Part shown: piece by piece, positions 13,217-31,494 of the stretch
Position numbering within the stretch: position 1 is the stretch's first letter
Layout: every line of letters begins with the position of its first letter
Assembly: GCF_000143415.4 (NCBI RefSeq)
Contig: NW_003314331.1
Span: 855,169 to 919,168 of the forward strand
Source of the DNA: Selaginella moellendorffii
Taxonomy: Eukaryota > Plantae > Lycopodiophyta
Length of the DNA stretch: 64,000 nucleotides
Reading direction: 5' to 3'
Notes under the pieces: model-generated
What the model saw: only the letters and a program-made list of their open reading frames with translations
What the model was told of the DNA's origin: nothing
Database searches by the model: none
Translations under genes and position numbers: made by a program

Positions 13217-14446
13217 TCAGATCTTCGTGGCTTCCTCCTCTTGCTTCTTCTGGGCATCGCGAGCGATCCCTCTCTTGCGAATGTTCAAGCTTGTCTTCAA
13301 GCGATTGGCATCGAGAGTGTGCTCCCGGAACAATCCCCTTATGAACCACAGCAGCGAGTGGAGGAAGTAGGGAGTGACGCGGGCCTCGTAGCCGATCCAT
13401 CGCATCGCGCACTGCGCGTAAGTATCCGGCGAGGGACAAGCAAGGGAAGGCTTTCGTACTCGCGTCATTTTCGTGGCGACATATAGAGGAACCTGTGACA
13501 GAAAAGAACGAGCGATCACTTCCAAAGTTCGTGGAAATGGTCTACTGGTACCTGGCATTGGATGTCGATTCCTACATCCCGGTACTCGACATTCAGTGAC
13601 TTCGAGAATTGGTCGACGAATCTGTGCGAAAAAAAAAGTGTTTTGCAGCTTAGAACAGCGAAACGTAGCCAGAGATCATAGCTTCAAACGGCTGAAGAAG
13701 AAGAAAGGAAGAACAATGAGAGGAGGAAGAACGTACCCTTTGGTCGCCGCGTAGAGCGAGTATAATGGATCCGAGGAGAGAATGGACGCTGCCCCGGAGC
13801 CCATATTGATGATACATCCTTTCCTCCGTTTGAGCATCCCCGGGAGAACCATGTGAACCATTCTCGTCATCGCCTCCACGTTGATCCGGAGGAGATTGGT
13901 GAGGAGCTCGTCGTCCACCTCGTGAAAGAATCGCGCGTAAGGATACGACATACCCGCGTTGTTCACCAGCATTCCCACCTCTAGCCCCTCGATCGCCCGC
14001 TCGACCCTCGACACCTCGGCCCGGAGATCCGGCCCGCAGAGATCGACCACCACGGGGAGATAATCCACGCCCTTGTACAGCGCCTGGAATTCCTGGATCA
14101 TGTCGCGGAGCTTGGATTCCGAGCGGCCGACGAGCACCAGATTGAGGCCGCGCTGCGCGAACTGGTGGCACAGCGCCTTGCCGATTCCATCCGTGCAGCC
14201 CGTGACCAGCGCCCAGGCGCCGTAATCCCTGACATTCTTGGCAGGCCGGAGGAATGCGGCCCAAATCCCAATGGAAAGCGCGTAGAGGAGGCGAAATCCA
14301 CAGAGCATACCGAAGATCGCCAGCGCCTTGACAACGGGGATGTAGTGCTGGACGCATGCGAAGGCGAGAGCTGTGATTCCGATGTTGCTCGCGTTCTCCA
14401 TCAGGAACTCGGACAGGATCTGCGCAGGCCCCGGTGTCGACGTCAT
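13217..14446 (-). CDS. KCR1: Very-long-chain 3-oxoacyl-CoA reductase (SDR)
   Basis: WALVTGCTDGIGK, NNAGMSYPYARFFHEVD, YAATK catalytic motif, QVPLYVATKM exon. Confidence 0.92.
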
Positions 14447-14739
14447 TTCGATCGGATCGATGGAGCGAGCGAGCGAGCGCCAAGCAAAGCGCGCCGAGAA
14501 TAACCTAAGCTAAAGAACTCACACTACTCCACACGACAATCCCCGCCGTTGGCTCCCAGACCATCGGAGCCGTCCACCGCCTTGAGCGCATTCATTGAGC
14601 GCCCAGAAGTTTGGTCTGTGACCTATTTAAAAGCGTCGGATATTCCCTTCAACGGCCAGCTTTTATTCCTTGCCAGCTGGGCACCTCTCTCTCGAAATTT
14701 TGTAGGTTCTTGCGAGTTTTCTTGGCAGATCGGGGAGAT

Positions 14740-15646
14740 ATGGGCAATCCGGTGGGGCTTCCGCTACTCCTGGCGATCACTAGCGTCATCGCGACGGCAT
14801 TTAAGTGGCATTCCGCGCCTCACAAGGTGCCATTCTGGTGGAATCTGCAGGGTAAAATCCATAGATTTCTATCGGCATTGTCTGATATCTAGATCTTCTA
14901 GGGCATCCCGTGGCCTGGGCGCCGCGATGGATCGGTCTCTTCGCGCTCCCGGTGCTCCAGTTCCTGATTCCATATGTCATCTATCAATTCGCCGCGCGCG
15001 ATAGGGATCTGGAGCGACAGGGGTGAGTGATTTCTCCCAAGTCTTCCAGATCTAGCACGGGAAATTTGATCGTCTGGGTGGATTTCCAGCGGAGAGTCAA
15101 AGCACGCGGCAGCCCACGTGATCTCCGTGCCGGCATTGTTCCTGTTCTTCGTTCACATTTTCGTGATCTTAGATGCGGCAACGAGTCCCAGCCATGACTT
15201 TCATCCTCGTCTCTTCGTTGCGAGCATAGCATTGTGGCTACTCTTCTGGTTTGGATATAACATCCAGGTACCGTCGAATTTTCATGCCTTGATCTTTCGT
15301 GGTGTCATGCGATTTCTTCTTTGATTCTTCCAGTATGTGGAGTTTAATTCCACCATTGGCATTCTAACACCATGGACAGTATCAAATTCTACTGTCTGGA
15401 AGCAAACCCAGAATCATGCAAGTACGTGAAATTCTTTTGGTTCCTTTGGTTTTTTTTAACAAAACTTTGTGTGTAGGTGTGATTCTTATGTTGTTTGGAA
15501 TCATATTACTCATTGTTTCGCTGGTGTGCCCCTTGGGAACTGGATTTCTAGTGACAACTCTAGTGCTTATGTTTGCTCCTTTCTTTTATTTCCTGATTTA
15601 TTCTTATTGTATCTTATCAAACAGTGGCGAACCATTACTACCTTGA
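14740..15646 (+). CDS. DUF1648/SdpI-like multi-pass membrane protein, 5 exons
   Basis: Exons 14740-14851, 14902-15022, 15090-15267, 15334-15421 and 15478-15646 splice in frame with GT-AG. Product contains KVPFWWNLQGHPVAWAPRWIGLFALP (DUF1648-like) and GYNIQYVEFNSTIGILTPWTVSNSTVWKQTQNHA (SdpI-like). Confidence 0.75.
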
Positions 15647-16524
15647 ATAATACAATATATAAGTAACCATATAATTGCATCTATCTTCACTAAATAGCAC
15701 GCCATACATCTGGACGAGGAGATTTCGCAGGAAGACGCTGTTCTTGTGGTCCCTGGGAAGGATCTAGGCGTGGATCTGGCGCGCCATCGCTGGCATTGTC
15801 GCAAGATGTGACGAGGGCGGCAAGCTCTTATGCGCATCGCATCATGGCCGTTGGATGATGGGGACGTCCGGGCAGGTTCTAGCTTCCATGGTCCAGCCAC
15901 GATGTTTTTCATGGCACGCGGCGAGAACTCATCCCCCATCGCTCAGCTGCACTCCAAATGCCGGAGGCAATCGCGATCACAATTAACTTCCTGCACACAA
16001 CTGGAGGGTGGTTTTCAGGGCGATGGATCAAAGGATATCATCTCCTAATGTCTTGCGCAGCTTACGTTTGGGTTGAGCGTCTCAGCGGCAGTGCAAGATC
16101 CATCCTATCCGGTAAGCTCTTATTCCGTTTGCTCTCTTCTTGTTTCTTCTTTTCCAGTTGTGAGTTTTCGATTATGTTGACACGGTTGTGATGATCGGAC
16201 AAGCCAGCACTTTCCAAAAGGACAGCACTATCCATACTTATGGAAACATCGTCTACATGAAATGCACATCTACTATACGATCTACATCTCGGACGTCTGT
16301 CCTAAGTCCATCTACAGGTACAAGAAAACTCATTTACATTTTGGACAGAACTAAACGAGTGGAAAATAGGTGGCCATAGAGACTGGAACCCTCCAAATAC
16401 GCTACGTTCCAGCTGATAGTCGTCAGCTGCTCTATACCGATGGCTTTCCAGTAAGAAACGTGTTTAACCGTGTTATATGCGCTTGCTTCAATGGAGCGTC
16501 CAACACCGCTCAAACAGGAGGCTT

Positions 16525-16600
16525 GGACATGCGAGTGATAGTAAGCAAGATAAGCGGGGTCTGACCTGAGGTTCTGCTCCGCCTCCACCACATCCAGCAG
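16525..16600 (-). pseudogene. Pumilio (APUM1-6-like) motif fragment; also ~21610-21690, ~31650-31730, ~52240-52320
   Basis: [20 protein letters not shown] resembles the conserved [17 protein letters not shown] motif of plant Pumilio proteins. No Puf repeats present. Confidence 0.6.
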
Positions 16601-16849
16601 CTGATATCTCCAGAGGATCTCAAGGTCTGTCAGTCTTTCTCCTCGAGTTTTAACAAGTTTGTCCTTTTACTGAGATCTTGGTTATCTCTTAAGGTTTCTA
16701 AGCAATGCACGGCGTTATTGCTTTCTACAAAGACACCACGAGAGTCCTTGTTAACGCTCTTGGATTTCAAACTTATGGAGGCACACGTCTGGGTGGGATG
16801 TTTTGTCAGAAATCCTGGAGGTCTCGAGTTTTCTTGACTTTTAGTTTTA

Positions 16850-17730
16850 GGGAAGGTCAGGTATGGACGTCCATGAGCAAGATGAGACTGCAGTTTCGCA
16901 ATGGTTTCAAGAAGCATGAGCCGCAGGTCTTCGAGATCATAACCTTTCCAAAGTTTGGCATTGGACAGCGAGCGTTTCTCATCCAGGCTCAAGGTGTGTA
17001 TGTTTGGAGCTATGGCCGTTGTGCATTTTTTATGGTTTTTATGTTTTTGATAGAGGGAAACATACTGTGGGACTGCATCTCATTTCTAGACGATGCCACA
17101 GTGGAGATAACCAAGTCACTAGGTGCATTGAGAGCGATTGCCATCTCTCACCTGCATTACTACAGCACAAACTCTCGATGGAGCGAGGCTTTTGGAGGCG
17201 TCCCGGTTTACACCCACGAATGGTATTGTCTACCTTTGTTTCTCTCTTTCATTTCGATCTCTCTGTATCCATACTTTTGCAGAGTGGTTTACCAGCACGA
17301 AAAGGTTAAGTTCTACTATGGGAGGGACTCACGCTTTTAGCCATTTTGCTGTTGCACAAATCCTCCACTGGTCTCATGGAGCTCAAGGGAGAGGTTTTTT
17401 ATTCACTGGAGATATCTTACAGGTATAAACTTCTGTCGTTTACGAACTTTGTTTTCGTTTTGTTTTCCTCACTCCATGTTTGATTTGTAGGTGGGGATGG
17501 ACAACAAAACAGTGAGCATAATGAGATCGTATCCAAGTTATATACCACTCTCGTCCATGTTTGATTTGTAGGTGGGGATGGACAACAAAACAATGAGCAT
17601 AATGAGATCGTATCTAAACTATATACCACTCTTGTCAAGCCACACTAAAAGGATAGGCCAGGTGATCGAGCCATGGGATTTTGGGAGGCTCTACGTTGCG
17701 TTTCAGGACAGAGAGGATGACGCTGCTTAA
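16850..17730 (+). pseudogene. YmaE-like metallo-beta-lactamase-fold hydrolase, copy 1
   Basis: GQVWTS..PKFGIGQRAFLIQ, GNILWDCISFLDD, AIAISHLHYYST..WSEAFG, LFTGDILQV, SIMRSYPSYIPL. Spliceosomal introns, internal deletion, ~81-bp duplicated last-exon start, no N-terminus. Confidence 0.75.
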
Positions 17731-17936
17731 GCATCACAATTATCGATTGACTCTCAAGTAATGAATCAGACTGAAACTCGAGATGTCTTTCTGATTATGA
17801 TTTGCCATAACATTGTTTCCAAAGCTAAATTGGACATTTGTTTTTGTGAGGGAGACAGTGACACAATCAATTTAGAGTGAGCAGTGTTACAGCATACACA
17901 GTGGATACATGAGTTTCTTTTTACAAGATCTTTTGT

Positions 17937-18581
17937 CTAACTTTTAAGCTTCTCCAATGCTTGTCTTACATCTTCAACTCTTGCAATTTCCTTAAGCAGG
18001 TTGCTTATCTTCTTCAATTCATCATATTTATGCCCTTTCCTGTTTTTGAATGCACGGATGACAATTCCATTGCTGGGCTGCAAGCAAAAGGACTCTGGCT
18101 TGTCGTCCACGATCACCGTGTGTCTCAGGTCCCGCCCTAATCTTGAAAGATCTTTCACAACCTTTCTCCCTCCCACTTCCTTGGGCGAGCATGAATCTCT
18201 GTAGAGGCGATGGGTGAAGAGATTCCCAGCTGGGTCGAGCCTATCCAATATCCTGTCTGCATAAGGCTTCACCGCTCGAGTAAAAACCACGATCTCATAT
18301 ATCTCACTCATCTCATTTAGAAATGTATCCACACCCGGCCGCTTTGCGACAAGGTAACGCTGCAATGGAAGAGTCTTCCCACTGAAGAGCTTGAGGGACG
18401 CTGTAGCCTTGTGGGCATGGATTAGTGTCTCGTCCATGTCTAACACAAGCGTCGGTTTCTCCTCCAAAGCTGGCGGTAGTAGTGGAGAACTGTGTGTCAC
18501 CTTTACCTTTTTGTTCTTTACTTTGGTCACCATGTCGAGAGTTGCAAAACTCCAATCGCCATATTCTCTCGCCCTCTTCAT
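17937..18581 (-). CDS. NIF/FCP1-homology (SCP1-like) HAD phosphatase, copy 1
   Basis: Intact 214-aa ORF with LVLDMDETLIH (DxDxT), KRPGVDTFL and VKDLSRLGRDLRHTVIVDD. Confidence 0.85.
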   Translation of the reverse strand: MKRAREYGDWSFATLDMVTKVKNKKVKVTHSSPLLPPALEEKPTLVLDMDETLIHAHKATASLKLFSGKTLPLQRYLVAKRPGVDTFLNEMSEIYEIVVFTRAVKPYADRILDRLDPAGNLFTHRLYRDSCSPKEVGGRKVVKDLSRLGRDLRHTVIVDDKPESFCLQPSNGIVIRAFKNRKGHKYDELKKISNLLKEIARVEDVRQALEKLKS

Positions 18582-19231
18582 CGCTGTGATAAAAAAGAAA
18601 GAAAGAACGCAAGCCCTAATTGTAAAGGATCTTTATAAATCAAATTAAATACACTTTACTAAATATACCATAATTCTGGCCGTAGAAAATTTCATGGATT
18701 TTTTCTCTCAGGCTCGCTGGTTTTGGAGGTGGGAGCGTTGTCCCGCTTAAATGGCAATCCACAGTTTGAGAGGAGTACGCGCAGTACTAGTGAACTGAAC
18801 TTACTGGGAACGAACCTTGACATAACTGAAGATTTGTTCGATTGCATATTCTGGAACGCAGAGAGAGTTCAGTAGCTTTGGTTCTGACCTCCAGCATGGA
18901 TGTAAAGCGGATTTGAGTCACTGAAGGCGGAAGTTTGCCGGCTGAGAAAGAATCCAACAGCTCCAAATTTCCTTTAGCTCCAATCTAAACTCGCCTCAAG
19001 ATGTTCGTCTTTCGATTCTGACTTGAGCATTGAGAACGTGTGTTTCATTGTAGATCATTCCAACCATGGTGGTGAAACCATGGTTATCAACGTTAAGGTG
19101 CTACTACTGCCACTGGAGTAAAAGTTTGTGCGAGCTTTTGTGTGAGTTCGTGCTCTTGGATCTTTATCTATGGGAGATTGCCCCCTTTGTTTGCTCAATC
19201 TATTCTCTTTTCTCTTGGCTCTCCAGAAATT

Positions 19232-19486
19232 ATGGCTCCTACTCGAAAGCTTGTGCTTGCATCGCTCCTCTCATGCCTGGTCATCGCTGCGGCTTTTGCT
19301 GCTGCAGTTTTGTTTAGTTCTCTCTCCAAAATCTCGATAGTTTCTGTGTCCACACCAGCGACGACCATGGCGATCCATCAGCAAACTACAGTGCTCAATA
19401 GTATAACTCTCTGTGTGTTTTCCATGACGTTTTTTCTGTGGATCTTAGCCTTCCTTTACACGGCTAGGCCATGTTTTGTTCTTTGA
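19232..19486 (+). CDS. Small hydrophobic peptide (signal peptide + C-terminal TM); copies start at 24302, 29375, 34340, 38545, 42772, 53684 (frameshifted), 57956
   Basis: MAPTRKLVLASLLSCLVI(A/T)AAFAAA..LCVFSMTFFLWILAFLY, preceded by an apparent 5'UTR intron (gtgagt..ctccag). No family recognised. Confidence 0.4.
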   Translation: MAPTRKLVLASLLSCLVIAAAFAAAVLFSSLSKISIVSVSTPATTMAIHQQTTVLNSITLCVFSMTFFLWILAFLYTARPCFVL

Positions 19487-19519
19487 AGTTAAGCTTGACT
19501 CGAGAAAATAAAGTGGTCA

Positions 19520-19781
19520 AGAAGTGGATGATCTTGCTCGCCGGGTCCACTCTGCTGGATTTGTCACAGTCTTCGCTGGTTGTGAATTTCGAGTCGGAGG
19601 ACACGTTCATTGACCCTGAAGGCAGCGCTCGCAGCAGTGGAAGCGTATACAATTTCTAGATTTTGAGAAGCACTGTTTTCTGCTACATTTCAAGTGGCTT
19701 GCAGATCCGTGGTGGTATGAACTTGGGGAACGTGAAGTCCTATCTCGATACTGGGGCGAGTCATGTGTTGTCACCTCGGTA
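19520..19781 (+). pseudogene. HISN3 exon 3/4 fragment on + strand; also ~24590-24851, 29660-29921, 43045-43308, 50920-51182
   Basis: [19 protein letters not shown] plus degenerate GLQI.GG.NLGN.KSYLD.GASHV, matching the intact gene at 60316-61595. Confidence 0.85.
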
Positions 19782-19809
19782 AGTGTTTTACATCAGTCTT
19801 GGAATTTAA

Positions 19810-20860
19810 CTCTTAACATTGTGTGTGTGAGACTAAGTCTTGCTCTGGCATTCTCTCGTGAGCAAGGAGCGCGATGCAATCGTCTGGATGGCAATGGTGC
19901 CAGCTTTTGCTCACAAGGGACTCCTCTTGGAAACTTGAGTTTGGTGCCCGGAAGAGGCTCATCGCTTCTTGGAGGTGGCCAATTCCAGAGATAGGCCGAG
20001 AGGAGCACTGTGCGCGCCATCTTGCTCTTGTAAGGCATTCGATCGTAAATAAACTTTGCATTTTCAAGATGGTTTCTAGAGGTGAGCATATGGATCATTG
20101 TTGCCCAAGAGATGAGCCATCTTTAGGAAGGAATCTAGTGCCTCGTCCAAATGCCCATTCGAGGCATATGCGGCAAGCATGGAGTTCCAAGCCACCACGT
20201 GCCTCTCAAACAAACATTTAGCCTCCTCCAAGCAGCCATGAGGTGCATAGCCGTCGATCATAGCCGTAAACGCCACCTCATTAAGATCCGGGGCATCTTC
20301 AAAGAGATTCTTTGCTTGCTCCATATGCCCGGCGTTCAAAGAGATCTTTGGCTTCATCCAGCCGCCGGTTCTGGCAGTGGCCTTGGATCATGGCCGTCCA
20401 CGGCGCGTGAGAGATGCCCGTTATGGGCATATGGCACGATCATGGCCGTGCTAGAAACCAGGGTTTGCTCCGGCATGGAGTGGAATACCGCCTCCGCCTC
20501 GCCGAGATTGCCACTCGGCGAGTACATCTGGATCATCGCGTTCCAGGTGATGGAATTCTTTGCAGGGATGCGATCGAAGAGCTGCTTGGCGCGCTGCACG
20601 TCCCCGGCCGCGGCGTATGGGCGTTGCCGCGGTATGCTTTCCAGGACCGATCGCGCCTGCTTCAGGTCGTGGTTGCGAATGTAGGCCTGGAGGGTGAGAT
20701 TCCAAGAGAAGAGATTGGGATCCGAGGTAGAATCGAAGACCGATCGCGCTTCCTCCAGGCAGCCGCAGCGGCCATACATCTGGACGAGGAGATTTCGCAG
20801 GAAGACGCTGTTCTTGTGGTCGCTGTGAAGGATCTGGGCGATGGATCCGGCGGCCATTGT
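19810..20860 (-). pseudogene. PLS-class PPR gene fragment; also ~24880-25930, 29960-30925, 51220-52128
   Basis: NLLVQMYGRCGCLEEARSVFD, ITWNAMIQMY, VAWNSMLAAYASNGHLDEA; broken by stops and deletions. Confidence 0.85.
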
Positions 20861-21456
20861 CGCAAGATGTGACGAGGGCGGCAAGCTCTTATGCGCATCG
20901 CATCATGGCCGTTGGATGATGGGGACGTCCGAGGTTCAAGTCCTGGCAGGTTCTAGCTTCCATGGTCCAGCCACGATGTTTTTCATGGCACGCGGCGAGA
21001 ACTCATCCCCCATCGCTCAGCTGCACTCCAAATGCCGGGCGCGCTCGTCAACGACACAATTAACTTCCTGGACACAAGTGGAAGAGAGCAGGCTGGTTTT
21101 CCGGGCGATGGATCAAAAGGATATCATCTCCTAGTGTCTTGGCGCAGCTTACGTTTGGGTTGAGCGTCTCAGCGGCAGTGCAAGATCCATCCTATCCGGT
21201 AAGCTCTTATTCCGTTTGCTCTCTTCTTGTTTCTTCTTTTCCAGTTGTGAGTTTTCGATTATGTTGACACGGTTGTGATGATCGGACAAGCCAGCACTTT
21301 CCAAAAGGACAGCACTATCCATACTTATGGAAACATCGTCTACATGAAATGCACATCTACTATACGATCTACATCTCGGACGTCTGTCCTAAGTCCATCT
21401 ACAGGTACAAGAAAACTCATGTATATTTTGGAGAGAACTAAACGAGTGAAAAATAG

Positions 21457-21648
<192 letters not shown>

Positions 21649-21939
21649 TGACCTGAGGTTCTGCTCCGCCTCCACCACATCCAGCAGCTGATGATATCTC
21701 CAGAGGATCTCAAGGTCTGTCAACCTTTCTCCTCGACTTTTAACAAGTTTGTCCTTTTACTGAGATCTTGGTCATCTCTTAAGGTTTCTAAGCAATGCAC
21801 GGCGTTATTGCTTTCTACAAAGACACCACGAGAGTCCCTGTTAACACTCTTGGATTTCAAAGTTATGGAGGCACACGTCTGGTGGGATGTTTTCTCAGAA
21901 ATCCTGGAGGTCTCGAGTTTTCTTGACTTTTAGTTTTAG

Positions 21940-22810
21940 GGAAGGTCAGGTATGGACGTCCATGAGCAAGATGAGATTGCAGTTTCGCAATGGTTTCAAG
22001 AAGCATGAGCCGCAGGTCTTCGAGATCATAACCTTTCCAAAGTTTGGCATTGGACAGCGTGCGTTTCTCATCCAGACTCAAGGTATGTATGTTTGGAGCT
22101 ATGGCCGTTGCGCATTTTTTATGGTTTTTATGTTTTTGATAGAGGGAAACATACTGTGGGACTGCATCTCATTTCTAGACGATGCCACAGTGGAGATAAC
22201 CAAGTCACTAGGTGGATTGAGAGCGATTGCCATCTCTCACCCGCATTACTACAGCACAAACTCTCGATGGAGCGAGGCTTTTGGAGGCGTCCCGGTTTAT
22301 ACCCACGAATGGTATTGTCTACCTTTGTTTCTCTCTTTCGTTTCGATCTCTCTGTATCCATACTTTTGCAGAGTGGTTTACCAGCACGAAAAGGGTAAGT
22401 TCTACTATGGGAGGGACTCACGCTTTTAGCCATTTTGCTATCCTCCACTGGTCTCATGGAGCTCAAGGGAGGGGTGTTTTATTCACTGGAGATATCTTAC
22501 AGGTATAAACTTCTGTCGTTTACAAACTTTGTTTTCGTTTTGTTTTCCTCACTCCGTGTTTGATTTGTAGGTGGGGATGGACAACAAAACAGTGAGCATA
22601 ATGAGATCGTATCCAAGCTATATACCACTCTCGTCCATGTTTGATTTGTAGGTGGGGATGGACAACAAAACAGTGAGCATAATGAGATCGTATCTAAACT
22701 ATATACCACTCTTGTCAAGCCACACTAAAAGGATAGGCCAGGTGATCGAGCCATGGGATTTTGGGAGGCTCTACGTTGCGTTTCAGGACAGAGAGGATGA
22801 CGCTGCTTAA
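21940..22810 (+). pseudogene. YmaE-like MBL-fold hydrolase, copy 2 (others ~26997-27865, 31978-32848, 52559-53250)
   Basis: Same as copy 1 but with the SHPHYY motif. Confidence 0.75.
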
Positions 22811-23017
22811 GCATCACAATTATCGATTGACTCTCAAGTAATGAATCAGACTGAAACTCGAGATGTCTTTCTGATTATGATTTGCCATAACATTGTTTCC
22901 AAAGCTAAATTGGACATTTGTTTTTGTGAGGGAGACAGTGCCACAATCAATTTAGAGTGAGCAGTTGTTACAGCATACACAGTGGATACATGAGTTTCCT
23001 TTTACAAGATCTTTTGT

Positions 23018-23662
23018 CTAACTTTTAAGCTTCTCCAACGCTTGTCTTACATCTTCAGCTCTTGCAATTTCCTTAAGCAGATTGCTTATTTTCTTCAATT
23101 CATCATATTTATGCCCTTTCCTGTTTTTGAATGCACGGATGACAATTCCATTGCTGGGCTGCAAGCAAAAGGACTCTGGCTTGTCGTCCACGATCACCGT
23201 GTGTCTGAGGTCCCGCCCTAATCTCGAAAGATCTTTCACAACCTTTCTCCCTCCCACTTCCTTGGGCGAGCATGAATCTCTGTAGAGGCGATGGGTGAAG
23301 AGATTCCCAGCTGGGTCGAGCCTATCCAATATCCTGTCCGCATAAGGCTTCACCGCTCGAGTAAAAACCACAATCTCGTATATCTCACTCATCTCATTTA
23401 GAAATGTATCCACACCTGGCCGCTTTGCGACAAGGTAGCGCTGCAATGGAAGAGTCTTCCCACTGAAGAGCTTGAGGGACGCTATAGCCTTGTGGGCATG
23501 GATTAGTGTCTCGTCCATGTCTAACACAAGCGTCGGTTTCTCCTCCAAAGCTGGCGGTAGTAGTGGAGAACTGTGTGTCACCTTTACCTTTTTGTTCTTT
23601 ACTTTGGTCACCATGTCGAGCGTTGCAAAACTCCAATCGCCATATTCTCTCGCCCTCTTCAT
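23018..23662 (-). CDS. NIF/FCP1-homology phosphatase, copy 2
   Basis: Intact 214-aa ORF, DMDET motif. Confidence 0.85.
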   Translation of the reverse strand: MKRAREYGDWSFATLDMVTKVKNKKVKVTHSSPLLPPALEEKPTLVLDMDETLIHAHKAIASLKLFSGKTLPLQRYLVAKRPGVDTFLNEMSEIYEIVVFTRAVKPYADRILDRLDPAGNLFTHRLYRDSCSPKEVGGRKVVKDLSRLGRDLRHTVIVDDKPESFCLQPSNGIVIRAFKNRKGHKYDELKKISNLLKEIARAEDVRQALEKLKS

Positions 23663-25709
23663 CGCTGTGATAAAAAAGAAAGAAAGAACGCAAGCCCTAA
23701 TTGTAAAGGATCTTTATAAATCAAATTAAATACACTTTACTAAATATACCATAATTCTGGCCGTAGAAAATTTCATGGATTTTTTCTCTCAGGCTCGCTG
23801 GTTTTGGAGGTGGGAGCGTTGTCCCACTTAAATGGCAATCCACAGTTTGAGAGGAGTACGCGCAGTACTAGTGAACTGAACTTACTGGGAACGAACCTTG
23901 ACATAACTGAAGATTTGTTCAATTGCATATTCTGGAACGCAGAGAGAGTTCAGTAGCTTTGGTTCTGACCTCCAGCATGGATGTAAAGCGGATTTGAGTC
24001 ACTGAAGGCGGAAGTTTGCCGGCTGAGAAAGAATCCAACAGCTCCAAATTTCCTTTTCAAGAAGTTCGTCTTTTGCTGATATCTATTCTGACTTGAGCAT
24101 TGAGAACGTGTGTTTCATTGTAGATCATTCCAACCATGGTTGTTAAACCATGGTTATCAACGTTAATGTGCTACTACTGCCTCTGGAGTAAAAGTTTGTT
24201 CGAGCTTTTGTGTGAGTTCGTGCTCTTGGATCTTTATCTATGGGAGATTGCCCGCTTTGTTTGCTCAATCTATTCTCTTTTCTCTTGGCTCTCCAGAAAT
24301 TATGGCTCCTACTCGAAAGCTTGTGCTTGCATCGCTCCTCTCATGCCTGGTCATCACTGCGGCTTTTGCCGCTGCAGTTTTGTTTAGTTCTTTCTCCAAA
24401 ATCTCGATAGTTTCTGTGTCCACACCAGCGACGACCATGGCGATCCATCAGCAAACTACAGTGCTCAATAGTATAACTCTCTGTGTGTTTTCCATGACGT
24501 TTTCTCTGTGGATCTTAGCCTTCCTTTACAGTACAGATCCTGCCCGAGTGTACTCAAAACAGTAAGAAACTTCAAGAAAATAAAGTGGTCAAGAAGTGGA
24601 TGATCTTGCTCGCCGGGTCCACTCTGCTGGATTTGTCACAGTCTTCGCTGGTTGTGAATTTCGAGTCGGAGGACACGTTCATTGACCCTGAAGGCAGCGC
24701 TCGCAGCAGTGGAAGCGTATACAATTTCTAGATTTTGAGAAGCACTGTTTTCTGCTACATTTCAAGTGGCTTGCAGATCCGTGGTGGTATGAACTTGGGG
24801 AACGTGAAGTCCTATCTCGATACTGGAGCAAGTCATGTGTTGTCACCTCGGTAAGTGTTTTACATCAGTCTTGGAATTTAACTCTTAACATTTTGTGTGT
24901 GTGAGATTAAGTTTTGCTCTGGCATTCTCTCGTGAGCAAGGAGCGCGATGCAATCGTCTGGATGGCAATGGTGCCGGATTTCGCTCACAAGGGACTCCTC
25001 TTGGAAACTCGAGTTTGGTGCCCGGAAGAGGCTCATTGCTTCTTGGAGGTGGCCAATTCCAGAGATAGGCCGAGAGGAGCACTTTGCGCGCCATCTTGCT
25101 CTTGTAAGGCATTCGATCGTAAATAAACTTTGCATTTTCAAGATGGTTTCTAGAGGTGAGCATATGGATCATTGTTGCCCAAGAGATGAGCCATCTTTAG
25201 GAAGGAATCTAGTGCCTCGTCCAAATGCCCATTCGAGGCATATGCGCCAAGCATGGAGTTCCAAGCCACCACGTGCCTCTCAAGCAAACATTTAGCCTCC
25301 TCCAAGCAGCCATGAGGTGCATAGCCGTCGATCATAGCCGTAAATGCCACTCATTAAGATCCGGGGCATCTTCAAAGAGATTCTTTGCTTGCTCCATATG
25401 CCCGGCCTGGTGATCATGGTCGTCCATGTTACTAGGGCATTCTATCAAAGAGATCTTTAGCTTCATCCAGCCGCTGGTTCTGGCAGTGGCCTTGGATCAT
25501 GGCCGTCCACGGCGCGTGAGAGATGCCCGTTATGGGCCATGGCCGTGCTAGAAACGGGGGTTTGCTCCGGCATGGAGTGGAATACCGCCTCCGCCTCGCC
25601 GAGATTGCCACTCGGCGAGTACATCTCGATCATCGCGTTCCAGGTGATGGAATTCTTTGCAGGGATGCGATCGAAGAGCTGCTTGGCGCGCTGCACGTCC
25701 CCGGCCGCG

Positions 25710-25809
25710 NNNNNNNNNNNNNNNNNNNNNNNNNNNNNNNNNNNNNNNNNNNNNNNNNNNNNNNNNNNNNNNNNNNNNNNNNNNNNNNNNNNNNNNNNNN
25801 NNNNNNNNN
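25710..25809. other. Assembly gap (100 N)
   Basis: N run. Confidence 0.99.
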
Positions 25810-26709
25810 ATCGCGCTTCCTCCAGGCAGCCGCAGCGGCCATACATCTGGACGAGGAGATTTCGCAGGAAGACGCTGTTGTTGTGGTCGCTGTGAAGGAT
25901 CTGGGCGATGGATCCGGCGGCCATTGTCGCAAGATGTGACGAGGGCGGCAAGCTCTTATGCGCATCGCATCATGGCCGTTGGATGATGGGGACGTCCGAG
26001 GTTCAAGTCCTGGCAGGTTCTAGCTTCCCGATGTTTTTCATGGCACGCTGCGAGAACTCATCCCCCATCGCTCAGCTGCACTCCAAATGCCGGGCGCGCT
26101 CGTCAACGACAGAATTAACTTCCTGGACACAAGTGGAAGAGAGCAGGCTGGTTTTCCGGGCGATGGATCAAAAGGATATCATCTCCTAATGTCTTGCGCA
26201 GCTTACGTTTGGGTTGAGCGTCTCAGCGGCAGTGCAAGATCTATCCTATCCGGTAAGCTCTTATTCCGTTTGCTCTCTTCTTGTTTCTTCGTTTCCAGTT
26301 GTGAGTTTTCGATTATGTTGACACGGTTGTGATGATCGGACAAACCAGCACTTTCCAAAAGGACAGCACTATCCATACTTATGGAAGCATCGTCTACGTG
26401 AAATGCACATCTACTATACGATCTACATCTCGGACGACTGTCCTAAGTCCATCTACGGGTACAAGAAAACTCATTTATATTTTGGAGAGAACTAAACGAG
26501 TGAAAAATAGGTGGCCATAGAGACTGGAACCCTCCAAATACGCTGCGTTCTAGCTGATAGTCGTCAGCTGCTCTATACCGATGGCTTTCCAGTAAGAAAC
26601 GTGTTTAACCGTGTTATATGCGCTTGCTTCAATGGAGCGTCCAACACCGCTCAAACAGGAGGCTTGGACATGCGAGTGATAGTAAGCAAGATAAGCAGGG
26701 TCTGACCTG

Positions 26710-26829
26710 NNNNNNNNNNNNNNNNNNNNNNNNNNNNNNNNNNNNNNNNNNNNNNNNNNNNNNNNNNNNNNNNNNNNNNNNNNNNNNNNNNNNNNNNNNN
26801 NNNNNNNNNNNNNNNNNNNNNNNNNNNNN
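26710..26829. other. Assembly gap (120 N)
   Basis: N run. Confidence 0.99.
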
Positions 26830-28072
26830 CTCTTAAGGTTTCTAAGCAATGCACGGCGTTATTGCTTTCTACAAAGACACCACGAGAGTCCTTGTTAACA
26901 CTCTTGGATTTCAAAGTTATGGAGGCACACGCTCCATACGTCTGGGTGGGATGTTTTCTCAGAAATCCTGGAGGTCTCGAGTTTTCTTGACTTTTAGGGA
27001 AGGTCAGGTATGGACGTCCATGAGCAAGATGAGATTGCAGTTTCGCAATGGTTTCAAGACGCATGAGCCGCAGGTCTTAGAGATCATAACCTTTCCAAAG
27101 TTTGGAATTGGACAGCGTGCGTTTCTCATCCAGACTCAAGGTATGTATGTTTGGAGCTATGGCCGTTGTGCATTTTTTATGGTTTTTATGTTTTTGATAG
27201 AGGGAAACATACTGTGGGACTGCATCTCATTTCTAGACGATGCCACAGTGGCGATAATCAAGTCACTAGGTGGATTGAGAGCGATTGCCACCTCTCACCC
27301 GCATTACTACAGCACAAACTCTCGATGGAGCGAGGCTTTTGGAGGCGTCCCGGTTTATACCCGCGAATGGTATTGTCTACCTTTGTTTCTCTCTTTCATT
27401 TCGATCTCTCTGTATCCATACTTTTGCAGAGTGGTTTACCAGCACGAAAAGGTGAAGTTCTACTATGGGAGGGACTCACGCTTTTAGCCTTGCACAAATC
27501 CTCCACTGGTCTCATGGAGCTCAAGGAGAGGTGTTTTATTCACTGGAGATATCTTACAGGTATAAACTTCTGTCGTTTACAAACTTTGTTTTCGTTTTGT
27601 TTTCCTCACTCCATGTTTGATTTGTAGGTGGGGATGGACAACAAAACAGTGAGCATAATGAGATCGTATCCAAGCTATATACCACTCGTCCATGTTTGAT
27701 TTGTAGGTGGGGATGGACAACAAAATAGTGAGCATAATGAGATCGTATCTAAACTATATACCACTCTTGTCAAGCCACACTAAAAGGATAGGCCAGGTGA
27801 TCGAGCCATGGGATTTTGGGAGGCTCTACATTGCGTTTCAGGACAGAGAGGATGACGCTGCTTAAGCATCACAATTATCGATTGACTCTCAAGTAATGAA
27901 TCAGACTGAAACTCGAGATGTCTTTCTGATTATGATTTGCCATAACATTGTTTCCAAAGCTAAATTGGACATTTGTTTTTGTGAGGGAGAAAATGCCACA
28001 ATCAACTTAGAGTGAGCAGTGTTACAGCATACACAGTGGATACATGGAGTTTCTTTTTACAAGATCTTTTGT

Positions 28073-28715
28073 CTAAGCTCTAAGCTTCTCCAATGCTTGT
28101 CTTACATCTTCAACTCTTGCAATTTCCTTAAGCAGATTGCTTATCTTCTTCAATTCATCATATTTATGCCCTTTCCTGTTTTTGAATGCCCGGATGACAA
28201 TTCCATTGCTGGGCTGCAAGCAAAAAGACTCTGGCTTGTCGTCCACGATCACCGTGTGTCTGAGGTCCCGCCCTAACCTTGAAAGATCTTTCACAACCTT
28301 TCTCCCTCCCACTTCCTTGGGCGAGCATGAATCTCTGTAGAGGCGATGGGTGAAGAGATCCCAGCTGGGTCGAGCCTATCCAATATCCTGTCCGCATAAC
28401 GCTTCACCGCTCGAGTAAAAACCACGATCTCATATATCTGACTCATCTCATTTAGAATGTATCCACACCCGGCCGCTTTGCGACAAGGTAGCGTTGCAAT
28501 GGAAGAATCTTCCCACTGAAGAGCTTGAGGGACGCTGTGGCCTTGTGGGCATGAATTAGTGTCTCGTCCATGTCTAACACAAGCGTGGGTTTTTCCTCCA
28601 AAGCTGGCGGTAGTAGTGGAGAACTGTGTGTCACCTTTACCTTTTTGTTCTTTACTTTGGTCACCATGTCGAGCGTTGCAAAACTCCAATCGCCATATTC
28701 TCTCGCCCTCTTCAT
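28073..28715 (-). pseudogene. NIF/FCP1-homology phosphatase, copy 3 (frameshifted)
   Basis: ORF split into 28452-28715, 28291-28746 and 28073-28312 by two single-base losses. Confidence 0.8.
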
Positions 28716-31494
28716 CGCTCTGATAAAAAAGAAAGAAAGAACGCAAGCCCTAATTGTAAAGGACCTTTATAAATCAAATTAAATACACTTTACGAAATAT
28801 ACCATAATTCTGGCCGTAGAAAATTTCATGGATTTTTTCTCTCAGGCTCGCTGGTTTTGGAGGTGGGAGCGTTGTCCCGCTTAAATGGCAATCCACAGTT
28901 TGAGAGGAGTATGCGCAGTACTAGTGAACTGAACTTACTGGGAACGAACCTTGACATAACTGAAGATTTGTTCGATCACATATTCTGGAACGCAGAGAGA
29001 GTTCAGTAGCTTTGGTTCTGACCTCCAGCATGGATGTAAAGCGGATTTGAGTCACTGAAGGCGGAAGTTTGCTGGCTGAGAAAGAATCCAACAGCTCCAA
29101 ATTTCCCTTAGCTCCAATCTAAACTCGCCTCAAGAAGTTCGTCTTTTGCTGATATCTATTCTGACTTGAGCATTGAGAACGTGTGTTTCATTGTAGATCA
29201 TTCCAACCATGGTGGTGAAACCATGGTTATCAACGTTAAGGTGCTACTACTGCCACTGGAGTAAAAGTTTGTGCGAGCTTTTGTGTGAGTTCGTGCTCCT
29301 GGATCTTTATCTATGGGAGATTGCCCCCTTTGTTTGCTCAATCTATTCTCTTTTCTCTTGGCTCTCCAGAAATTATGGCTCCTACTCGAAAGCTTGTGCT
29401 TGCATCGCTCCTCTCATGCCTGGTCATCACTGCGGCTTTTGCTGCTGCAGTTTTGTTTAGTTCTTTCTCCAAAATCTCGATAGTTTCTGTGTCCACACCA
29501 GCGACGACCATGGCAATCCATCAGCAAACTACAGTGCTCAATAGTATAACTCTCTGTGTGTTTTCCATGGCGTTTTTTCTGTGGATCTTAGCCTTCCTTT
29601 ACACGGCTAGGCCATGTTTTGTTCTTTGAAGTTAAGCTTGACTCGAGAAAATAAAGTGGTCAAGAAATGGATGATCTTGCTGGCCGGGTCTACTCTGCTG
29701 GATTTGTCACAGTCTTCGCTGGTTGTGAATTTCGAGTCGGAGGACACGTTCATTGACCCTGAAGGCAGCGCTCGCGGCAGTGGAAGCGTATACAATTTCT
29801 AGATTTTGAAAAGCGCTGTTTTCTGCTAGATTCCAAGTGGCTTGCAGGTTGGTGGTGGTATGAACTCGGGGAACGCGAAGTCCTATCTCGATACTGGGGC
29901 GAGTCATGTGTTGTCACCTCGGTAAGTGTTTTACATCAGTCTTGGAATTTAACTCTTAACATTGTGTGTGTGAGACTAAGTCTTGCTCTGGCATTCTCTC
30001 GAGAGCTTAGAGAGTTTGGTGCCCGGAAGAGGCTCATTGCTTCTTGGAGGTGGCCAATTCCAGAGATAGGCCGAGAGGAGCACTGTGCGCGCCATCTTGC
30101 TCTTGTAAGGCATTCGATCGTAAATAAACATTGCATTTTCAAGATGGTTTCTAGAGGTGAGCATATGGATCATTGTTGCCCAAGAGATGAGCCATCTTTA
30201 GGAAGGAATCTAGTGCCTCGTCCAAATGCCCATTCGAGGCATATGTGCCAAGCATGGAGTTCCAGGCCACCACGTGCCTCTCAAACAAACATTTAGCCTC
30301 CTCCAAGCAGCCATGAGGTGCATAGCCGTCGATCATAGCCGTAAATGCCACCTCATTAAGATCCGGGGCATCTTCAAAGAGATTCTTTGCTTGCTCCATA
30401 TGCCCGGCCTGGTGATCATGGTCGTCCATGTTACTAGGGCATTCTATCAAAGAGATCTTTAGCTTCATCCAGCCGCTGGTTCTGGCAGTGGCCTTGGATC
30501 ATGGCCGTCCACGGCGCGTGAGAGATGCCCGTTATGGGCATATGGCACGATCATGGCCGTGCTAGAAACCAGGGTTTGCTCCGGCATGGAGTGGAATACC
30601 GCCTCCGCCTCGCCGAGATTGCCACTCGGCGAGTACATCTCGATCATCGCGTCCCAGGTGATGGAATTCTTTGCAGGGATGCGATCGAAGAGCTGCTTGG
30701 CGCGCTGCACGTCACCGGCCGCGGCTTCAGGTCGTGGTTGCAAATGTAGGCCTGGAGGGTGAGATTCCAAGAGAAGAGATTGGGATCCGAGGTAGAATCG
30801 AAGACCGATCGCGCTTCCTCCAGGCAGCCGCAGCGGCCATACATCTGGACGAGGAGATTTCGCAGGAAGACGCTGTTGTTGTGGTCGCTGTGAAGGATCT
30901 GGGCGATGGATCCGGCGGCCATTGTCGCAAGATGTGACGAGGGCGGCAAGCTCTTATGCGCATCGCATCATGGCCGTTGGATGATGGGGACGTCCGAGGT
31001 TCAAGTCCTGGCAGGTTCTAGCTTCCCGATGTTTTTCATGGCATCCCCGATCGCTCAGCTGCACTCCAAATGCCGGGCGCGCTCGTCAACGACAGAATTA
31101 ACTTCCTGGACACAAGTGGAAGAGAGCAGGCTGGTTTTCCGGGCGATGGATCAAAAGGATATCATCTCCTAGTGTCTTGGCGCAGCTTACGTTTGGGTTG
31201 AGCGTCTCAGCGGCAGTGCAAGATCTATCCTATCCGGTAAGCTCTTATTCCGTTTGCTCTCTTCTTGTTTCTTCTTTTCCAGTTGTGAGTTTTCGATTAT
31301 GTTGACACGGTTGTGATGATCGGACAAGCCAGCACTTTCCAAAAGGACAGCACTATCCATACTTATGGAAACATCGTCTACATGAAATGCACATCTACTA
31401 TACGATCTACATCTCGGACGTCTGTCCTAAGTCCATCTACAGGTACAAGAAAACTCATGTATATTTTGGAGAGAACTAAACGAGTGAAAAATAG

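Follow-up and report, generated by a model that had tools for sequence, protein, structure and literature searches.

An intron-containing DUF1648-SdpI family gene of Selaginella moellendorffii and its orthologues in mosses and ferns

INTRODUCTION

The SdpI/DUF1648 family of membrane proteins has been reviewed as one of bacteria and archaea only (PMC2910880). Its sole studied member is SdpI of Bacillus subtilis, the first half of which is said to bind the toxin (PMC11995493). An initial annotation of a 64,000-nucleotide stretch of Selaginella moellendorffii DNA (hereafter the window, meaning that whole stretch) placed an intron-containing homolog of this immunity protein at positions 14740 to 15646. 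The locus raises three questions: whether a plant gene of this family is real, how it came to be there, and what its product might do. We are fairly confident that it is a genuine, expressed DUF1648-SdpI gene, ancestral together with its introns and likely of prokaryotic origin, and that its product would act as a stand-alone receptor rather than as one half of an SdpR-SdpI switch.

RESULTS AND DISCUSSION

Structure and expression of the gene

No single open reading frame (ORF) spans the whole gene; the initial annotation had joined five exons into a multi-transmembrane protein of about 220 amino acids. That reconstruction proved correct. The five exons (14740 to 15646, plus strand) form a 669-nt reading frame encoding 222 amino acids, the hydropathy profile of the spliced protein contains six hydrophobic segments, and both peptide strings quoted in the annotation are present in the product, the first of them spanning the exon 1/2 joint. 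The four introns measure 50, 67, 66, and 55 nt; every one is bounded by GT and AG, and all are lower in G+C than the exons. Introns this short are in keeping with a spikemoss. Splicing was assessed with contigs from four public runs, each of a different study (X1, X4, X6, and X7, presumed to be RNA), which were aligned to positions 14400 to 16000. The features of the gene are as follows.

14694..14739, plus strand: 5' untranslated part of exon 1 (minimum extent); spliced contigs start at 14694 (X6) and 14709 (X7)
14740..14851, plus strand: exon 1, coding part, amino acids 1-37 plus one base; helix 1 and first half of DUF1648; joint 14851/14902 present in X4, X6, and X7
14852..14901, plus strand: intron 1, 50 nt, GT..AG, phase 1; position common to Sphagnum fallax and Ceratopteris
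14902..15022, plus strand: exon 2, amino acids 38-77; second half of DUF1648 (HP...PRW) and helix 2
15023..15089, plus strand: intron 2, 67 nt, GT..AG; removed in contigs of all four runs
15090..15267, plus strand: exon 3, amino acids 78-137; helices 3 and 4
15268..15333, plus strand: intron 3, 66 nt, GT..AG, phase 0, with an in-frame stop; from the gene model and contigs
15334..15421, plus strand: exon 4, amino acids 138-166; loop 4 with the SdpI core motif
15358..15378, plus strand: GILTPWT, amino acids 146-152, the plant form of prokaryotic GIRTPWT by alignment
15422..15476, plus strand: intron 4, 55 nt, GT..AG; from the gene model and contigs
15477..15646, plus strand: exon 5, coding part, amino acids 166-222; helices 5 and 6 and the tail; stop codon at 15644-15646
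15629..15640, plus strand: C-terminal EPLL, an instance of the plant-conserved (E/Q)PL(L/V/I/T), missing from prokaryotic relatives

One contig each from X4, X6, and X7 (three studies) carried all four joints exactly at the modelled positions. X1, from the fourth study, carried three of them, with the first represented by a loose end at 14852 that continues into exon 2. Intron-less copies that are 99-100% identical to an intron-bearing genomic locus are what spliced mRNA gives; the junctions, which the annotation had suggested examining in RNA data, are thus seen in intron-free contigs of four studies. Contig starts at 14694 to 14709 indicate a short 5' leader. Five variant letters distinguish the transcript contigs from the genome, three of them synonymous and two conservative (V to I and M to I). 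The gene at 14740-15646 is a real, spliced, expressed nuclear gene.

Because all other known members are prokaryotic, the locus might be a bacterial contaminant or an artefact of assembly. Against it, the gene contains four spliceosomal introns that are removed in transcripts, the same contig carries flanking plant genes (SDR, copper amine oxidase, and PPR), and orthologues in Sphagnum and Ceratopteris lie on chromosome-scale scaffolds. We therefore rejected this explanation, to which we attach a negligible probability.

Membership in the DUF1648-SdpI family

The annotation had assigned the product to the DUF1648+SdpI family and proposed a profile search against both Pfam domains, for which the gathering scores are 28.7 bits (DUF1648, PF07853) and 28.2 bits (SdpI/YfhL, PF13630). 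Against DUF1648, exon 1 scored 21.5 bits (profile positions 1-27) and exon 2 14.8 bits (31-48); against SdpI, exon 4 scored 27.8 bits (4-29) and exon 5 7.4 bits (32-71). Both pairs are collinear, and their totals of 36.3 and 35.2 bits exceed the respective cutoffs, as rough sums over exon pieces each of which alone falls below. Full-length moss and fern orthologues matched both domains in every case (9/9; best DUF1648 E value, 1.7e-10), and the Sphagnum orthologue P0009 reached 31.3 bits for SdpI in one stretch. Within NCBIfam, no model matched the plant proteins or two prokaryotic relatives.

For comparison, a prokaryotic sample of at least 120 loci was gathered with the degenerate DNA pattern GIRTPWT(x5)VW. 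Since selection was by a motif that the plant protein shares, the loci listed are not to be read as its nearest relatives. They come from Bacteroidota, Chloroflexota, Bacillota, Patescibacteria, Planctomycetota, Myxococcota, Euryarchaeota, DPANN archaea, and further groups. The spliced protein, searched locally by phmmer against these at least 120 prokaryotic ORFs, matched all 120 of those listed, the best among them with 67 bits over residues 11-212. Full-length scores of 50 to 67 bits are far beyond what a seven-residue motif would yield, even for loci selected by that motif. The alignment of the plant profile with a Balneolaceae protein by hhalign had a probability of 96.8% (E value, 2.7e-10). 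The layout agrees as well: the window protein has 222 amino acids, six segments, and the motif at amino acids 146-152, and the prokaryotic ORFs listed mostly have 210-230 amino acids with the motif at about 145-150. Identity to the prokaryotic members listed is 14-22%. Together with the fold comparison given below, these profile and sequence matches support the assignment of the protein to the DUF1648-SdpI family, otherwise known from bacteria and archaea.

Orthologues, age, and distribution among plants

An exhaustive phmmer search with exon 3 (a 59-aa query) against 1.84 billion representatives returned only 8 true relatives. The full-length matches were P0005 of Ceratopteris richardii and P0009 of Sphagnum, each 44% identical to the window protein over its whole length, and word-based searches added further Ceratopteris, Adiantum, Pteridium, and Sphagnum proteins. 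All five exon pieces align collinearly and end to end on the moss and fern proteins, 45 columns are invariant among 9 orthologues, and conservation among plants is slightly higher in the first half of the protein than in the second half. Public databases already hold these orthologues under the names "DUF1648 domain-containing protein," "uncharacterized membrane protein," and "hypothetical protein." A literature search by SdpI, DUF1648, Pfam/InterPro accessions, and plant horizontal gene transfer (HGT) turned up no publication about any member from plants or other eukaryotes, in agreement with the annotation, which knew of no characterised plant homolog.

The orthologues Ceratopteris richardii KP509_03G074400 and Sphagnum fallax BDL97_07G044400 share with the Selaginella gene five exons, 44% identity, and the tail motif, and all four intron positions are common to Selaginella, S. 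fallax (contig L128), and Ceratopteris (contig L130). The ferns differ from Selaginella in having two paralogue lines, GVPVF in place of TPWT, and far longer introns; intron 3, for instance, measures 66 nt in Selaginella versus about 15 kb in Ceratopteris. In the unannotated contigs L001, L002, and L005, four or five of the five exons were found, with matching boundaries. The gene of L005 is also carried by L006, a contig of run SRR3099021, which consists of Physcomitrium patens whole-genome data (PMC13672439); P. patens thus has an orthologue.

For L005 to L007 (P. patens), L001, and L002 to L004, the exhaustive search recovered ORFs of exon fragments alone, all from raw assemblies, and no annotated protein of full length. 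With only fragments on record, the gene may be missing from published annotations, that of the model moss included.

The annotation had also proposed a phylogeny, and two trees were built. In the broad tree (10 plant sequences and 103 prokaryotic sequences from the loci listed), the plants form one clade (SH-aLRT, 100) whose stem is long, at 1.9 changes per site; no sister of this clade is supported, and the row closest to it is a Myxococcota bin. The second tree (14 plant rows and 12 prokaryotes) again united the plants (100/100) and resolved the groups Physcomitrium with L001, L002 with Sphagnum, and Selaginella with two fern paralogue clades (95/98). Within plants, the gene tree matches the species tree, and L001 and L002 to L004 fall with the mosses. 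The trees thus indicate vertical descent among mosses, the lycophyte, and ferns. Shared introns and a species-like tree place the gene and its introns before bryophytes and vascular plants separated. A recent or Selaginella-specific transfer was rejected on the same grounds, namely, shared introns, moss and fern orthologues, and the agreement of gene tree and species tree.

No relative was found in seed plants, algae, or other eukaryotes by the exhaustive exon-3 search (59 aa) and the word-limited searches. Searches with two orthologues and, as a profile, with their alignment likewise reached plants only, being word limited; the database of the profile search, in which no alga or other eukaryote was found, includes EukProt sequences, from which a Pteridium fragment came. 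A pattern search of genome contigs with the plant alignment, using patterns that were too plant specific, returned nothing, and tblastn of the Sphagnum protein against plasmids gave no match even at an E value of 1. A seed-plant orthologue conserved like those of ferns and mosses (43 to 55 bits) should have been seen; thus, to judge from these searches, the gene was likely lost in seed plants.

This seeming loss, along with the loss of TPWT in ferns and of basic loop residues, could be taken to mean that the gene is a decaying relic, transcribed but useless. We regard that as very improbable. Moss, lycophyte, and fern lineages have been separated for hundreds of millions of years, and over that time the frame has stayed intact in mosses, the lycophyte, and two fern paralogue lines. 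The intron positions have been kept, 45 columns show no change across the 9 orthologues, most of the transcript variants are synonymous, and spliced transcripts occur in four studies.

Origin of the plant gene

The annotation had described the gene as anciently acquired by HGT or retained, and domesticated with introns. Its age is borne out by the orthologues and their shared introns. We consider transfer from a prokaryote into the stem of land plants, or earlier, to be the simplest reading and somewhat the better bet. The gene would have entered before land plants diverged and been inherited vertically thereafter. The alternative, to which we give an appreciable but clearly smaller chance, is that no transfer took place and that the gene descends from an early eukaryote or from the ancestor of plastids, with loss in the majority of lineages. 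The missing supported prokaryotic sister, the long stem, and the old, conserved introns are all compatible with such retention. Against it stand the searches of the 1.84 billion representatives with exon 3 and of the EukProt-containing database with a profile, neither of which found an alga or other eukaryote, and the lack of a transit-peptide-like N-terminal extension.

Predicted fold, membrane topology, and C-terminal tail

The AlphaFold2 model of the Sphagnum orthologue (44% identical to the window protein), computed with 54 sequences, has a pLDDT of 94 and a pTM of 0.87 and consists of six long helices with a beta-hairpin in the DUF1648 loop. It superposes on ESM Atlas models of bacterial SdpI/DUF1648 clusters with TM scores of 0.85-0.90 and a root mean square deviation of about 2 Å over 209-212 residues. 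No solved structure with the same fold was found by PDB sequence search, by Foldseek (best E value, 0.37), or by VIA-align against all representatives (best Z score, 7.7); the PDB matches were not above the level expected of helical bundles.

With the B. subtilis SdpI family, the plant protein thus shares its length class, six helices, the order DUF1648 then SdpI, and the place of the loop-4 motif (GILTPWT...VW corresponding to GIRTPWT...VW), and the orthologue is predicted to have the fold of bacterial family members. This comparison is with the family, as B. subtilis SdpI itself lies outside the sample. The plant gene differs in being nuclear, in having four introns, and in having no ArsR/SdpR gene adjoining it. 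The protein differs in its low identity to the members listed (14-22%), an added conserved C-terminal (E/Q)PL(L/V) tail, a nearly lost loop charge bias, and an altered motif. The Selaginella loop 4 reads GILTPWT, VW, and QTQ; T-P-W-T and W are kept, and R, K, and H of GIRTPWT(x6)W.KTH are replaced (R by L and K-T-H by Q-T-Q). The arginine is missing from the plant clade as a whole.

The loss of charge bears on topology. In the prokaryotic sample, the side of the membrane with the N terminus, loop 2, loop 4, and the C-terminal end carries 7.4 lysines and arginines versus 1.8 on the opposite side, a bias that puts loop 4 in the cytoplasm, where a repressor could bind. In plants, the bias has shrunk to 1.7 versus 1.0. 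One or more N-x-S/T sequons occur in loop 4 of 12/13 plant sequences (two in Selaginella, N142 and N155) versus 8/45 prokaryotic sequences, counts over related rows to which we attach no statistics, and loop 1 contains no such sequon in any of the 13 plant sequences. The lost charge bias and the loop-4 sequons make the orientation of the plant protein uncertain; to judge from these sequence features, it may be inverted in the membrane, so that loop 4 and the tail would face the lumen or the cell exterior.

Prokaryotic relatives end shortly past the YSY at the end of helix 6, a motif that the plants have in common with them. The plant proteins continue into a short tail with the consensus (E/Q)PL(L/V/I/T), in which P-L is invariant in 9 orthologues: GEPLLP in Selaginella, DQPLL in Sphagnum, SEPLL in Physcomitrium, SEPLL or SEPLI in mosses, and RQPLT/V or QEPLV in other orthologues, with ferns showing (E/Q)PL(V/T/I). 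The proposal that EPLL is a dileucine-like sorting signal gained no support. The canonical acidic dileucine [DE]xxxL[LI] was rejected because the acidic residue stands two, not four, positions before the first leucine, and the side of the membrane on which the tail lies is itself uncertain. At the other end, helix 1 begins at residue 4-5, as in prokaryotes, with no N-terminal extension, which makes a plastid or mitochondrial presequence unlikely. Helix 1 itself likely inserts the protein into a membrane of the secretory pathway.

The ArsR-type partner of prokaryotic relatives

Directly upstream of the membrane protein gene and on the same strand, 44/118 of the prokaryotic loci listed have an ORF of 83-105 aa of ArsR type. 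Four upstream examples are ArsR-type winged-helix proteins by profile (HTH_5, 44-62 bits; HTH_20, 46-57 bits), and the arrangement is, as far as sequence tells, that of SdpR-SdpI. The membrane proteins of these pairs are of the same kind as the plant protein and match it over their full length; the plant locus differs in having no ArsR gene. A search of the 64-kb window with 56 prokaryotic upstream ORFs gave no significant match (best E value among the 56 queries, 0.012). About half of the prokaryotic relatives listed are also without a repressor neighbor; thus, the orphan state is not special to plants.

A different neighbor was observed at five Chloroflexota loci (including L097, L060, L009, and L046; Anaerolineae and others), where an SPFH/Band 7 protein is encoded upstream of the SdpI-like gene. 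It scores 130 bits in L097 and replaces or accompanies the ArsR regulator.

Another member from an organism lacking SdpR and SdpC is TrpP (Cgl1) of Corynebacterium glutamicum, for which its authors proposed a regulatory role via an unknown partner (PMC11995493). By its description, with which we compared the plant protein, TrpP differs in having three helices, only the second half of the fold, and another C-terminal extension.

Possible role of the plant protein

In prokaryotes, the gene would typically follow that of a small ArsR-type repressor. The plant protein appears to have kept the fold and, in its first half, the outer beta-hairpin; its gene stands without the repressor neighbor, the basic residues of loop 4 are gone, and a short conserved tail has been added. 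The missing repressor neighbor, the loss of the loop-4 basic residues, and the new tail point to a stand-alone membrane receptor or binding protein. It would probably reside in the secretory-pathway or plasma membrane, its first half recognizing a membrane-associated ligand, with output passing through a new partner or a sorting step.

By analogy with Bacillus, the protein might instead be an immunity or sensor protein directed at membrane-active peptide toxins of soil bacteria, as the annotation had envisaged; a peptide bound in the membrane would leave the plant cell protected or the attack reported. Family and fold agree with such a role, and the half said to bind the toxin in B. subtilis (PMC11995493) is the half somewhat better conserved among plants. 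We nonetheless hold it unlikely. The family occurs in most bacterial and archaeal phyla, DPANN archaea and Patescibacteria included, and SdpI is its only studied member. So wide a spread makes SDP immunity an unlikely general job for the family and thus a weak prior for the plant clade, which is moreover only 14-22% identical to the prokaryotic members listed. Quite unlikely, too, in our estimate, is the fullest combination of these elements, in which a prokaryote-derived, ArsR-free receptor with a new tail, perhaps inverted in the membrane, would sense or counter membrane-active peptides of soil bacteria and would have been lost as seed plants arose.

The gene represents a new plant branch (mosses, lycophytes, and ferns) of a family whose relatives are otherwise all bacterial or archaeal. 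It is a further candidate for prokaryotic acquisition ahead of the divergence of land plants, with later loss in the seed-plant line. Many families of this kind are already on record for plants, and the finding has no bearing on a long-standing open question. Its practical interest lies in P. patens, which carries the gene and in which knock-outs are easy, and which thus offers a second handle on the role of the family without its repressor partner.

Genomic surroundings

Intron-bearing plant genes lie on both sides of the locus, with a copper amine oxidase-like gene upstream and PPR genes downstream. An SDR/KCR-like gene (start codon at 14446, minus strand) stands head-to-head with the SdpI-family gene, 293 nt separating their start codons. 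A contig of X1 runs continuously from the SDR/KCR-like gene across the gap (14400-14762) into the first 23 nt of the coding region. This unbroken contig means either that the 5' ends of the two transcripts may overlap or that the contig is genomic DNA.

Beginning 55 nt past the stop codon, a tandem array with a unit of about 5.07 kb extends from 15701 to 31000 and perhaps further. Copies of a 31-nt marker stand at 15797, 20858, 25925, and 30923, and identity between blocks is 92-100%, mostly at least 97%. By eye, each unit comprises a metallo-beta-lactamase-like ORF, an FCP1/NIF-like phosphatase ORF, and a PPR gene, and the first unit begins within the 5' part of a PPR gene. At 17473-17634, within the first 5-kb unit, an 81-nt unit is present twice, head to tail, with 94% identity between the copies. 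At 15701-15738, many contigs of X1 and X4 match over only about 35 nt and then diverge into unrelated sequence; such matches are consistent with a short segment conserved across a large gene family, in this case the beginning of a PPR gene on the minus strand.
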